Notes: generated by a model from the sequence alone, not told the origin. A stretch of DNA of 64,000 nt from Macrostomum lignano (GCA_002269645.1 NIVC01002146.1:62001-126000), one strand, 5' to 3'. Positions 15,501-24,500 are shown, numbered from the stretch's first letter. Translations and numbers: made by a program.

Positions 15501-18500
15501 AGGAACATATTTAAACGTTATATAGGGTCTAGCAACTACATTCTGCGAAAGCTAAGTAATATATTGGACCAGTTCAGATTCCAGGGACAAGATTAAGCCA
15601 TGGCAGTACTAGCCAGGCTCGCATAAACAAAGCTGCCCTCCTTTGCAGTCAAATGTGACATTGAAATTTAGTGTTAATTATTAAAGTTGACAATAATTTA
15701 TAGTGTAAGAAATGCATGCCAGAGCGGAGAGGCTGATAGGTGAGGTAAAGGTGGCTGATAGACGAGTGTAGTGGCAGACAGATGATGCAGAGATGGAAGA
15801 TAGACGAGTGTAGTGGCAGACAGATGATGCAGAGATGGAAGATAGACGAGTGTAGTGGCAGACAGATGATGCAGAGATGGAAGATAGACGAGTGTAGTGG
15901 CAGACAGATGATGCAGAGATGGAAGATAGACGAGTGTAGTGGCAGACAGATAATGCAGAGATGGAAGATAGACGAGTGTAGTGGCAGACAGATGATGCAG
16001 AGATGGAAGATAGACGAGTGTAGTGGCAGACAGATGATGCAGAGATGGAAGATAGACGAGTGTAGTGGCAGACAGATGATGCAGAGACGGAAGATAGACG
16101 AGTGTAGTGGCAGATAGATGATGCAGAGATGGAAGATAGACGAGTGTAGTGGCAGATAGATGATGCAGAGACGGAAGATAGACGAGTGTAGTGGCAGATA
16201 GATGATGCAGAGATGGAAGATAGACGAGTGTAGTGGCAGATAGATGATGCAGAGACGGAAGATAGACGAGTGTAGTGGCAGATAGATGATGCAGAGACGG
16301 AAGATAGACGAGTGTAGTGGCAGATAGATGATGCAGAGACGGAAGATAGACGAGTGTAGTGGCAGATAGATGAGGCAGAGATGGAAGATAGACGAGTGTA
16401 GTGGCAGATAGATGACTCAACCAGAACGGGTCAGATTAAGGAGATAGCAGATAGAGGTTAAAGAGAGCAAATAAGTGAGACAGTTGGAGACAAAGGGACC
16501 TCAGTAAATGAGAGGTAAAATGCTACAAAGGAAAGTGAGATTCTACACAACAAAAGATGAGAGAAGGATGACCAGAATTACTTCTAGCAGGAGAATTCAA
16601 GGGAACAGGCAGGGTGAGAGCGGCAGATGAGAGGCAAAGAAGCTGCAGGGAGGGGATACAGCTGGGATCGGAGCCAGTCCCATCCCTAGTAAACGCAGAG
16701 GACTTAACAGCCCTTGGGCTGGCAATCCACAGAAATTAAAAAGACAGCAGGCCTGCAGCTGGTTAGGCAAAAAGGTTTCAAGCCCGAACCCGAGACACAC
16801 TGGTCACGGACAGTAAAAGGTAAGTTTTAAATCCCGATTTCTGGGATATAATTCCCTTCATTATATTAATCCTTCCAGGCTCCTAGCGGCGGAGATACAA
16901 TATCCTTGACTGACAAAAAAGGATCGCCCAAGAATGCCGCAATAGGCCGCGGATGTAAAACCTCAGAACTTGCCGAAATGTCAGCCAGACTTAACAAAAA
17001 CTGATTCACCAAATCTGCCATCAGGAAGCCTAATCACATAATCAATGATTGCATTTGATCTGGGGCAGTGAAGATTAACAAAAACTGATTCACCAAATCT
17101 GCCATCAGGAAGCCTAATCACATAATCAATGATTGCATTTGATCTGGGGCAGTGAAGATTAACAAAAACTGATTCACCAAATCTGCCATCAGGAAGCCTA
17201 ATCACATAATCAATGATTGCATTTGATCTGGGGCAGTGAAGATTAACAAAAACTGATTCACCAAATCTGCCATCAGGAAGCCTAATCACATAATCAATGA
17301 TTGCATTTGATTTGGGGCAGTGAAGATTAACAAAAACTGATTCACCAAATCTGCCATCAGGAAGCCTAATCACATAATCAATGATTGCATTTGATCTGGG
17401 GCAGTGAAGATTAACAAAAACTGATTCACCAAATCTGCCATCAGGAAGCCTAATCACATAATCAATGATTGCATTTGATCTGGGGCAGTGAAGATTAACA
17501 AAAACTGATTCACCAAATCTGCCATCAGGAAGCCTAATCACATAATCAATGATTGCATTTGATCTGGGGCAGTGAAGATTAACAAAAACTGATTCACCAA
17601 ATCTGCCATCAGGAAGCCTAATCACATAATCAATGATTGCATTTGATCTGGGGCAGTGAAGATTAACAAAAACTGATTCACCAAATCTGCCATCAGGAAG
17701 CCTAATCACATAATCAATGATTGCATTTGATCTGGGGCAGTGAAGATTAACAAAAACTGATTCACCAAATCTGCCATCAGGAAGCCTAATCACATAATCA
17801 ATGATTGCATTTGATCTGGGGCAGTGAAGATTAACAAAAACTGATTCACCAAATCTGCCATCAGGAAGCCTAATCACATAATCAATGATTGCATTTGATC
17901 TGGGGCAGTGAAGATTAACAAAAACTGATTCACCAAATCTGCCATCAGGAAGCCTAATCACATAATCAATGATTGCATTTGATCTGGGGCAGTGAAGATT
18001 AACAGTAGAACTACCAAGGGGGGGGGGGGAAATTCCCCCCCCCTGACAATTTTTTTTGCTGCGCCGGAACGGAGCAACGCAGACACACAAAATTCAAGAA
18101 CACGGGCTAACATTTTGTTGCGCACCTTCTCAAACAAGAATCAAGTCGCCAGCCCTTCGGACCGTCGAGATATTCGACGATTCTGCCAGAAGGTCGGATT
18201 TTTCCCATAAGCGCTAGTGTATTCAGTACACCCCTGTGCGCCAATCAGCACTGCGCCTCATTGCAGCCTTGCCAAGTCTCCAAATTTCATCAGCACGTCG
18301 ACCACATGTGTCTGCATCAGCTCTGACTTCGTTGGTCACTAGCCTTCACCGAGACGGAGCTTCTAGACCTTCAACAGGTGGCACCAGGTGACTATGAACA
18401 CCTTGATGCGAATTTCTCAAGTTTCACCGATCAAGCCTCGACAGTAGGCAAGCCTCAACTGCTGGACATCCTCAGCTAGTCTCTCGAGCATTCCGTCATC

Positions 18501-21500: not shown

Positions 21501-24500
21501 ATGCCGACTGTGCATGGCGGAAAGGAGCACAAGTGCGGAGAAGTACTCGCTGAACACGCGAAACAAAAAGTGTGCCAACTGCGCTAGTTTCGTGTGCAAG
21601 AGGCATCGAAACGATGTCTACTTGTGCGACACCTGCTACAACCAACAGTAAAAATCCAGCCGGAAGGAGCACGAAAGATTTCCGGCCACGAATTTGTTGT
21701 GCATGTCATCAGAAAATTGAAGGATATTTGAGGATAATGAAAAACTTTGTCATTGTTCTAGGATTTCTTGCGAATGTACAGTAGTAGCTATCATGCTTTT
21801 GCGCTAATTTTCGTTTATTTATTATAATACTAGTGGCTACCTTTACTTGATCCTTAGTTTCATTTGCGTGCCAGTAAATTCAATCGGTTTTTTTCATTTT
21901 TTAAAAGCATAACCCTTTCTGCATAAAAATTGGGTTCAATATTATAGTTGAATAAACTAAACAGCTTTTCGAATAAAATATGTATGTAGCTCGTATGTAT
22001 AAAAGTATGTGTAATAATATTATAAATATACAGCAACATGAGTTCAAGCTTAACTATAGCAATGTTCGTGCTTAAAAAAATCTGAGAGCTTCAGAAATGT
22101 TAAGAGCATGATGAAAAATCACGCTCAGGTGTCCTTACTCCCCTGGTGCCACCTGTTGAAGGTGCCGACGGTGTCGGTGTGATGACGGAATGCTCGAGAG
22201 ACTAGCTGAGGGTTTTCAGAAGTTGAGGCTTGCCAACTGTCGAGGCTTGATCGGCGAAACTAGAGAAATCAGCATCAGGTTGTCCATAGTCATCTGGTGT
22301 CATTTGTTGAAGGTGCCGACGTCATCGGGGTGATGACGGAATGCTCGAGAGACTAGCTGACAATGTCCGTCGGTTGAGGTTTGCCCATTATTGAAGCTTG
22401 ATAAGAAAGACCTGACATAGTTGCAAAAGGACGTCCATAGTCACCTGATGCCACCTGTTGAAGGTGCCGACGGTGTCGGGATGATGACGGAATGCTCAGG
22501 AGACTAGCTGAGGGTGTCCGGCAGTTGAGGCTTGCCTACTGTCGAGGCTTGATCGGTGAAACTCGAGAAATTCGCATCAGGGTGTCCATAGTCACTTGGT
22601 GTCATCTGTTGAAGGAGCCGACGGCGTCGGGATGATGACGGAATGCTTGAGAGACTAGCTGAGGATGTCCTGCAGTTGAGGCTTGCCTACTGTCGAGGCT
22701 TGATCGGTGAAACTTGAGAAATTTGCATCAAGGTGTTCATAGTCACCTGGTGCCACCTGTTGAAGGTCTAGAAGCTCCGTCTCGGTGAAGGCTAGTGACC
22801 AACGAAGTCAGAGCTGATGCAGACACATGTGGTCGACGTGCTGATGAAATTTGGAGACTTGGCAAGGCTGCAATGAGGCGCAGTGCTGATTGGCGCACAG
22901 GGGTGTACTGAATACACTAGCGCTTATGGGAAAAATCCGACCTTCTGGCAGAATCGTCGAATATCTCGACGGTCCGAAGGGCTGGCGACTTGATTCTTGT
23001 TTGAGAAGGTGCGCAACAAAATGTTAGCCCGTGTTCTTGAATTTTGTGTGTCTGCGTTGCTCCGTTCCGGCGCAGCAAAAAAAATTGTCAGGGGGGGGGG
23101 AAATTTTCCCCCCCCCTTGGTAGTTCGACGGGCGGAAAAATGGCTTGGTATTCCTACTGTTAACATTCTTTTAATTTAGCATAAAAAATTATTACACCTG
23201 CCCCAATTAGGCCGGATGTGCAACCGACAGCTCAGCCGCAGCTATTGCGCGGCGCATCTGAAGGCTGCGTACGGCTGTTCAGTCCAAGGACTGGGGGGGG
23301 GGGGGGTCGCCACACACACCCTCAATTACCCCAGCTAATGCTGGCACCCATTTTACAGCTGGGTGGACTGAAACAATGCAGAGTTAAGGGGTCTTGCTCA
23401 AGGACGCAAATTGTTCAAGTGGGATCGGGAATCGAATCCCCGACCTTTTAGTCGTGATTCCGACGCTCTGACCACTAGGCTACAACCCCCTTTAGCATGT
23501 TAGCATAAGCCTTTATATAATTTGTAGGCACAGCTTCATTTTCATATAGTTTTCTTTTGAATTCAAAAGCCCAAAATTGTCAATACTCACAAGTGAAATT
23601 TTTGTTGCTTCTACAGAGCGACACCAACAATAATGGCTTAGGAGTACCTGCATGCAACATTTTTGTTTAAAATATACTTGATTCAAATAGGAACAAAACA
23701 AAACGTTCAACTACATGTATTGCCACTTGCGACCATTTACAGCTTGGGGATTATGAAATCAAAAGAAAATAATATGAAAATGAAACTTAAACATGCTAAA
23801 TTACTTATTCGTAATCTTTACTGCCCCAGATCAAATTCAATTATTGATTTGTGGTGAAAAAAAATGATTTCTTCCCATCTCCGCAGTTTATTCTTTTCAG
23901 GAAATTGCGCCTCCAAAAAGACTACACGATCTTTGAGAGTAGCGTCCTGATATGCTGTTAGTGGTGGATACTAATAATAACACAATAATAGCACGAGAGT
24001 AATATTAAGGAAGGCTGCGGGCCCCCTGACGCAACGCCTTAGGCGACAACCAGCGCTGACCAGTGTCTTTTGGGTTGGCCCTCCCTCATATGACTGTGAA
24101 TCGCACAGCCCCCTCCCCAAATGAACCTCTATATTGTAATACTTCCGCCCGGAACTGAATAGACACAGCACAGCAACAGACCAATCCAGCAGTCGAAGCA
24201 CTCAGCTTGCATCAGCATGTGAAAAATCTGCCCAACCCGACAGACCAGCGCTTGCATGCACTATTTAATATAACAGGCCCTCCCAGCCGGCCCACTGCTT
24301 GCCTCCTCCCTCGGGACTGGTCTCAGGATAGAGAGCGTAGGAGCAGGGCTCGTTAGCCCCGATAACGGCAATAATCTTGAGAGCAAACGGTTTCTAGAAG
24401 CCAGAAAGGAAAAAGCTCTATAAAAGCAACTTTGCTTGAAAATGCTGCCAGTGTTTGATAGTTTAACTTAAATAAATATTTATAATTCTACTAAAATTCA

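Follow-up and report, generated by a model that had tools for sequence, protein, structure and literature searches.

A stretch of 64,000 nucleotides (nt) from the Macrostomum lignano assembly Mlig_3_7 (GCA_002269645.1 (PMC12801592); NIVC01002146.1:62001-126000), referred to in the following as the window, contains a complete piggyBac-like element of 5,157 bp on the plus strand (18003-23159). The element is, with high probability, an autonomous cut-and-paste transposon of the piggyBac superfamily that resides at an intronic TTAA and that carries, besides the transposase gene, a spliced and divergently oriented second gene (here called ORF2, for open reading frame 2). Members of the ORF2 family lie next to piggyBac transposases in other eukaryotes as well, and the gene evolves under purifying selection. 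Judged against the published surveys, the literature and the protein collections, the element is a new, two-gene variant of piggyBac. An initial annotation, made from the sequence alone, had reported a TTAA on both sides, a stop-free transposase of 588 amino acids with three Asp motifs and a Cys-rich tail, a second gene, and near-identical arms of 1173 and 1505 bp making up over half of the element, and had proposed that the element may still be mobile; the structural points were borne out by the evidence given in the following, which also supports mobility since the paralogous loci diverged.

The element is bounded by a TTAA target-site duplication (TSD; left copy at 17999-18002, right copy at 23160-23163), by terminal inverted repeats (TIRs) and by an empty site at a paralogous locus. 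On contig NIVC01001884.1 (L006) the flanks are 93-97% identical to those of the element in the window, and the alignment passes from the left flank straight to window position 23160. The empty site reads ...GCCAGAC-TTAA-(80 bp)-GTGAAGA-TTAA-CATTCTTTTAATTTAGC..., with a single TTAA at the point of insertion (L006 2404-2409). Because L006 represents an uninterrupted site with one TTAA, the boundaries of the element are fixed to the base, and the comparison shows that the element was inserted here, or was precisely excised from L006, after the two loci diverged. The empty site is compatible with a precise, TTAA-restoring excision and also with never having been occupied, and the element has been mobile since the paralogues diverged; the sole bound on the age of the insertion is that it is later than the 3-7% divergence of the paralogous loci.

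The left TIR (18003-18018, plus strand; CAGTAGAACTACCAAG) equals the right TIR (23144-23159, minus strand; CAGTAGGAATACCAAG) at 14 of 16 positions, and the degenerate 20-mer TTAACAGTAGRAMTACCAAG of the termini is present exactly twice in the window, in inverted orientation, with 0.00 occurrences expected by shuffling. Both ends begin with a C (CAGTAG...), in agreement with the 'first highly conserved cytosine' of piggyBac termini (PMC5381638) and not with the CCC or CACTA motifs of PMC10813416; the ends of a copy from a related family (L013) are CACTT and TCCTT. A minus-strand gene model of an SH3-PX-BAR (SNX9-like) protein, with a PX/BAR exon at 8575-9102, spans the element and the insertion is therefore intronic.

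The transposase gene (19885-21651, plus strand; 588 codons plus stop) matches the Pfam domain DDE_Tnp_1_7 (PF13843) over 349/349 profile positions (E = 1e-46), and residues 16 to 585 of the product align with the Trichoplusia ni (T. ni) piggyBac transposase (6X67; E = 6e-38), while the match to piggyBat is far weaker (E = 5.5e-7). The VDE, ADRFF and GTD motifs put the catalytic residues D237, D333 and D429 on D268, D346 and D447 of the T. ni protein. In the Cys-rich tail (C540-C584) all eight Cys/His ligands are kept (C540, C543, C563, C566, C571, H574, C581 and C584), and the alignment of these ligands identifies the tail as a predicted DNA-binding domain of the T. ni type. The best match in a search of 5.8 billion proteins (P0001, encoded on a Logan contig) is 71% identical, and as all others are at most 32% identical, the protein occupies a remote position within the superfamily; no called gene was retrieved when its exact sequence was looked up. 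The features that define the piggyBac superfamily, namely the TTAA duplication, the DDE_Tnp_1_7 domain with its DDD triad and the T. ni-type Cys-rich domain, are all present. Domesticated PGBD genes, in contrast, have lost their TIRs and TSD and occupy a fixed, single-copy orthologous locus, whereas here the TIRs and the TSD are intact and the element is missing from the paralogous locus.

The second gene is located on the minus strand and is predicted to consist of exon 1 (19241-19495; 85 codons, ATG at 19495), an intron of 70 nt (19171-19240; GTAAGT...TTCCAG) with its acceptor at the inner edge of the left inverted arm, and exon 2 (19099-19170; 23 codons plus stop), which lies entirely within that arm. 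An exhaustive HMMER search of 1.84 billion representative proteins retrieved 14 clusters (best E = 4.6e-37, 70% identity), all of which align to query residues 1-90, exactly the part upstream of the candidate intron. Only this exhaustive search succeeded, as a word-indexed homologue search with the spliced protein gave no match. A subsequent profile search added 33 proteins (within-family E-values down to 2e-41), none of them with a name or Pfam domain; the JGI metagenome contigs yielded one match of 15 residues only and IMG/VR nothing. Many homologues are uninterrupted ORFs of about 110 amino acids that share the C-terminal motif of the spliced ORF2 (VTGEEFVKYVVKILKDI in P0035, ITKKQFVDYVVRYLDDCF in P0042), and because the spliced C-terminus aligns with these intronless homologues, the product should have a length of 108 amino acids. 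A read-through form of 152 amino acids was therefore rejected. The spliced protein aligns end to end with the family signature, ..GGAT..(D/E)I..F..FC...RYE.YR.WAR.LR.RR...LK.YLR..TGG..VD..PP.....FV.YV.R.L.D. Judged from these homologies ORF2 is a real gene and not a chance ORF, with a predicted splice.

On the basis of an alignment of 30 sequences AlphaFold produced a compact six-helix model of ORF2 (predicted local distance difference test (pLDDT) 90, predicted template modelling score (pTM) 0.82); a single-sequence model of the unspliced form was uninformative (pLDDT 47). The central third of the protein, which includes a basic central helix, has a net charge between +8 and +10 in all family members, and the ends are acidic in most of them; the basic centre would be compatible with nucleic-acid binding. 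The family, which so far consisted only of unnamed metagenomic ORFs and now has a genomic context, may represent a new small fold.

The closest relative of the element is a sister element on contigs L001 and L008 (Logan runs SRR31628392/394/403/435), which encodes the 71% identical transposase and an ORF2 homologue (P0034) that is 63-70% identical to that of the window. L008 encodes P0034 and, on the opposite strand, a stretch that is 100% identical to residues 1-139 of P0001, and it overlaps L001 by 1,049 identical bases; the sister therefore carries the same divergent gene pair, with a spacer of 1,160 bp as compared to 389 bp in the window. A tblastn search for ORF2 in L001 was negative, but this was rejected as evidence against a conserved second gene, since the length of the spacer places the homologue past the end of L001, on the overlapping L008. 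A 90-nt intron interrupts the sister ORF2 at the codon where the intron of the window gene also lies, and exon 2 of the sister gene encodes PDGARNVSGEEFVNYVIKRMKDI. Outside the coding regions there is no nucleotide similarity between the two elements, and exon 2 of the sister apparently lies outside the repeat, whereas that of the window is inside the left arm. The proportions of non-synonymous and synonymous differences between window and sister (pN and pS, Nei-Gojobori) are 0.185 and 0.80 for ORF2, and 0.186 and 0.78 for the transposase; these values indicate that the synonymous sites are saturated and that the two proteins experience equal purifying selection. L008 and L010 both end exactly 30 nt into a sequence that recurs inverted at L001 2692-2721. 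Because an assembly graph with k = 31 stops in this way at a collapsed inverted repeat, inverted arms of at least 0.9 kb may tentatively be assigned to the sister as well.

In the more distant relatives tblastn recovered a piggyBac transposase homologue within 5.2 kb of ORF2 at every homologue locus with enough flank. The linkage holds for five of five independent element groups, some of which have a transposase that is only 28% identical (loci counted: L008, L013, L014/15, L016, L018-21 and L022; L011 and L012 are too short to judge). The gene pair is divergent in four of the six locus groups besides the window, with distances between ORF2 and transposase of 0.57 kb (L014/L015), about 1.8 kb (L018-L021) and 5.2 kb (L013) next to that of the sister; it is convergent in L016 (2.2 kb) and tandem in L022 (0.86 kb). 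The large distance in L013 comes with an insertion of 4.56 kb relative to L014 (L013 3228-7788, between transposase and ORF2), which may be a nested element. Beside the gene pair of L022 (4677-8586) we found an Exo_endo_phos ORF, a weak RAG1_imp_bd match and a DUF1280 ORF; Exo_endo_phos is typical of LINE (long interspersed nuclear element) elements and the locus appears to be a transposon-rich patch of a eukaryote. The short contig L011, from which P0035 derives, holds a divergent ORF (2-109, minus strand) at 280 bp upstream of the ORF2 homologue, which starts with MSSSSSSSESDSDYDIDNVSSDDDD and has an acidic, Ser-rich N-terminus as in piggyBac transposases; the contig ends before any diagnostic domain.

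Three of the loci (L013, L014 and L018) are insertions of one related family, about 83% identical, in which transposase and ORF2 are enclosed by imperfect inverted arms of 300-450 bp, so that the idea of a lineage with long arms, put forward in the initial annotation, applies beyond the window. The arms in this family are made up of tandem units of about 145 bp, with a copy number that is unequal between the two sides, and thereby mirror the 151-bp units in the arms of the window element. The extreme ends of L013 are short (directly following TTAA: CACTTACC... and TCCTTCGCG...). The motif CA[CG]GTGACT is found in the subterminal units of both lineages, in the same orientation relative to the ends (window 18385, 22439 and 22741; L014 5400, 8718, 8863 and 8997; L013 788, 927, 8915 and 9062); a longer alignment of the subterminal units (TCAACAGGTGGCAYCAGGTGACT versus TCAACATGGTGGTCACGTGACT) did not score above shuffles, and the shared motif is only a hint.

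The linkage data also bear on the question whether ORF2 belongs to the transposon at all. It could be a passenger outside the transposition machinery, either a fragment of a host gene captured by transduplication or a neighbouring host gene, and both the absence of a recognisable domain and the differing position relative to the transposase in L016 and L022 would fit such an origin. We consider this improbable, as ORF2 accompanies piggyBac transposases in all five independent groups despite the low identity between some of the transposases, is situated inside the inverted arms in the window, L013, L014 and L018, evolves at the same pN as the transposase, and has no stand-alone host paralogue among the 1.84 billion representative proteins.

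The inverted arms of the window element comprise 1,173 bp on the left (18003-19175, plus strand) and 1,505 bp on the right (21655-23159, minus strand; starting 3 nt past the stop codon of the transposase gene), and together account for 2,678 of the 5,157 bp (52%). A repeat search delimited them as 18005-19175 and 21655-23129, after which they were extended to the termini from the sequence. In a global alignment the arms differ by 4 substitutions in about 1,171 aligned positions and by four indels: a 28-bp spacer that is found at the right end alone (23127-23154, minus strand), small length changes in a G-run/C-run palindrome, two additional 151-bp repeat units in the right arm, and a T-run that differs by 2 bp. 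The 151-bp unit forms a subterminal tandem repeat of 2.2 copies in the left arm (18367-18704, plus strand) and of 4.3 copies in the right arm (22125-22767, minus strand). The left 16-bp terminal repeat joins the long arm directly (a spacer of 0 bp), while at the right end 28 bp separate CAGTAG from the resumption of the arm at AACTACCAAGG, and the spacer thus renders the two ends asymmetric. The left arm begins at the splice acceptor of ORF2, and ORF2 exon 2 recurs, together with its 3' region, as a non-coding copy in the right arm. Because the arms abut the stop codon of the transposase gene on one side and the acceptor of ORF2 on the other, the repeat would seem to have spread inward as far as coding constraints permit. 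Each arm contains, a few bases from its tip, a G-run/AAATT/C-run palindrome (left arm: 18019-18046, G12-AAATT-C9; right arm: 23090-23117, G9-AAAATTT-C10) that could form a hairpin or serve as a binding element; a related C-run, followed by TGGACAATATTTTGC, is seen at the left ends of both L013 and L014.

The initial annotation had named an assembly artefact as one finding that would undo its reading, and a palindromic chimeric long read could indeed create such a structure in a repeat-rich region for which a single assembly is available. However, the arms flank a unique centre of 2.5 kb, they differ from each other by the 4 substitutions, the 28-bp spacer and the two 151-bp units, the TSD is clean and the empty site is present, and related elements in unrelated assemblies share the layout, which makes an artefact extremely improbable. 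The same annotation had called the element intact and recent. Its intactness is evident from the ORFs, the termini and the TSD, but its recency cannot be derived from the identity of the arms: unlike long terminal repeats (LTRs), the arms are not regenerated at transposition, and their use as a clock for the insertion was rejected. The near-identity stems from a recent origin of the repeat or from its homogenisation and not from the age of the insertion.

The layout suggests how the two genes may be expressed. The 389 bp between the divergent start codons (19496-19884) form a putative bidirectional promoter that would drive both genes and that contains a TATAAAG (19775-19781) at a distance of 110 nt before the transposase ATG. 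Two outward-reading AATAAA are found on the left (18853-18879, minus strand; 220-245 nt past the ORF2 stop) and two in the right arm (21951-21977, plus strand; 300-325 nt past the transposase stop), and may serve as poly(A) signals. Both transcripts would then run outward and terminate in the innermost 424 bp of the arms, which are identical on the two sides and include the AATAAA, so that the mRNAs of the two genes would share their 3' sequence. The transposase would excise the element and integrate it at TTAA, in the canonical piggyBac cut-and-paste manner.

For the role of ORF2 we turn to analogy. Two-component transposons are known from other superfamilies: En/Spm (CACTA; TnpA and TnpD), PIF/Harbinger (a Myb-like protein and a transposase) and MuDR (mudrA and mudrB). 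The accessory protein of En/Spm binds to subterminal repeat arrays, and MuDR has long TIRs associated with its two genes. Because of the analogy with TnpA of En/Spm and the Myb-like protein of PIF/Harbinger, and because of the association with subterminal repeats, we tentatively favour a role of ORF2 as an accessory factor that would bind the ends (the subterminal repeat arrays) or the transposase and would aid or control end pairing, although our confidence in this assignment is limited. The main alternative, rather unlikely in itself, is that ORF2, instead of being an end-binding cofactor, encodes a protein by which the element represses or doses its own transposition, or one that serves nuclear import or stability. 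The small size of the protein, its basic core and the acidic ends seen in most of the family would fit such a role, and the restraint of piggyBat activity by additional subterminal binding sites (PMC11707139) provides a precedent for control at piggyBac ends.

Several results count against the two-gene interpretation or against a defined function of the second gene. The length of ORF2 is poor evidence for a gene, as an ATG ORF of at least 149 amino acids occurs in 2% of shuffles (p = 0.02) and 53% of the real windows of this repeat-rich genome have an ORF as long as ORF2. With respect to function, Foldseek searches with the ORF2 model found nothing in PDB and nothing credible in BFVD, profile searches in Pfam, PHROGs and PDB returned noise at most, and hhalign detected no relation between ORF2 and the transposase. 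The divergent layout is not universal, given the convergent and tandem arrangements in L016 and L022, and the 151-bp unit does not exceed chance in its similarity to the 145-bp unit of L014 (local score 14 versus 12.1 ± 1.8 for shuffles). Finally, no further copies of the element were found within the window or within 42 kb of paralogous sequence.

The last point raises the possibility that the element is intact in structure but inactive, a lone relic that has been silenced by, for instance, hairpin RNA from the host intron. Read-through of the intron across both arms would yield a hairpin of 1.2 kb, which is a plausible trigger of silencing. Set against this are the intactness of both ORFs and of the termini, the perfect TSD and the absence of the element from the paralogous site, and we regard a silenced relic as unlikely, albeit to be taken seriously; an autonomous two-gene transposon remains the best explanation.

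In the host flank, directly next to the left end of the element, an 84-bp unit that consists of TTAA and 80 further bp is repeated seamlessly twelve times in tandem (16991-17998, plus strand). The copies are near-identical, exactly 12 in number, and end at the TTAA of the TSD, whereas the empty paralogue has one (L006 2320-2409). The unit is flanked by a microhomology of 6 bp (TTAACA), so that the array could be the product of slippage. The probability of a chance adjacency between an array boundary and the end of the element is roughly 3% (about 80 array boundaries in 64 kb). A transposase-linked origin of the array is possible, either by local hops followed by unequal exchange between copies and then by precise excision, or by repeated breakage and repair at the end of the element. 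Some 630 bp beyond the right end of the element (23794-23849) we observed an inverted and diverged copy of part of the 84-bp unit (82% over 56 nt, compared to 17040-17095), and the host flanks may belong to an older inverted-repeat element. Taken together, the observations could point to an as yet unrecognised clade of two-component piggyBac elements, in which a 110-amino-acid protein with a new fold would recognise the ~150-bp subterminal repeat arrays of the long arms and be required for, or gate, the synapsis of the ends by the DDD transposase, with the 84-bp amplification in the host as a by-product of the activity of the element; as a whole this combination is speculative and we consider it unlikely to hold in all its parts.

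The initial annotation had also described the element as foldback-like. The Foldback (FB) elements of Drosophila have long inverted arms of tandem subrepeats with a copy number that varies between the arms; they have neither TTAA specificity nor a piggyBac transposase, and a unique centre is usually small or missing. The description thus holds for the shape, that is for the long arms of tandem repeats, but not for membership of the foldback class, given the unique 2.5-kb centre, the piggyBac transposase and the TTAA; the resemblance is in shape alone. En/Spm, PIF/Harbinger and MuDR likewise pair a transposase with a small accessory protein, but they belong to unrelated transposase superfamilies with other target duplications, and ORF2 has no detectable similarity to their accessory proteins.

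With T. ni piggyBac (IFP2; 6X67, 6X68) the element shares the TTAA duplication, the DDD triad, the ligand pattern of the Cys-rich domain, an acidic and Ser-rich N-terminus of the transposase, and asymmetric ends, where the spacers are 0 and 28 bp in length as compared to 3 and 31 bp between the 13-bp TIR and the 19-bp inner repeat in T. ni (PMC5381638). It differs in that its termini begin with CAG instead of CCC, in its arms of 1.2-1.5 kb (13 + 19 bp in T. ni), in the second gene and in its size (5.2 kb versus 2.5 kb). The published surveys of piggyBac elements describe single ORFs, TIRs that are mostly shorter than 20 bp and reach up to 528 bp, and subterminal inverted repeats of up to 400 bp (PMC5381638, PMC10813416). 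With respect to repeats, the most similar cases are the piggyBac group SG2, whose subterminal inverted repeats measure 11-400 bp (PMC5381638), and an element of Crassostrea virginica, PiggyBac-2_Cvir, for which a TIR of 528 bp and a TATG duplication are reported (PMC10813416). Like the window element these are members of the piggyBac superfamily whose inverted repeats by far exceed the canonical 13 bp, but the arms described here are two to three times the longest reported, reach the ends of the genes and include a coding exon. The element departs from the 'single ORF' of the surveys, which is a descriptive and not a mechanistic feature of the family. Literature searches found no two-ORF piggyBac and no endogenous piggyBac of M. 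lignano, and the transposase and the ORF2 protein were both missing from a collection of 15 billion proteins, in keeping with the earlier suggestion that the element was possibly undescribed.

The remainder of the window is rich in repeats, with more than 40 distinct minisatellite arrays (periods of 9-241 bp) that fill much of the 64 kb. Besides the SNX9-like PX/BAR exon (8575-9102) it contains a gene for an EF-hand protein (781-1332), a seven-transmembrane (7TM) fragment, a homeodomain fragment and an intronless alpha-tubulin gene (31144-32508), the latter at a locus that is found in three assembly copies with 93-98% identity. One of the three contigs that encode this tubulin, NIVC01002146.1, is 100% identical to window positions 21144-42508, which places the window on that contig.

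PiggyBac is among the most used tools for gene transfer and has always been handled as if a single protein were all it needs. The existence of a natural lineage in which the transposase is joined by a conserved accessory protein would extend what is known of the superfamily, the more so if that protein is tied to long ends made of repeat arrays, and could yield a transposition system that is controlled by a second component; ORF2 itself would provide a new small fold to characterise. In M. lignano, which serves as a transgenic model, T. ni piggyBac is already in use (PMC8717057), and an intact endogenous piggyBac could be a native tool for this organism as well as a source of instability in its genome.

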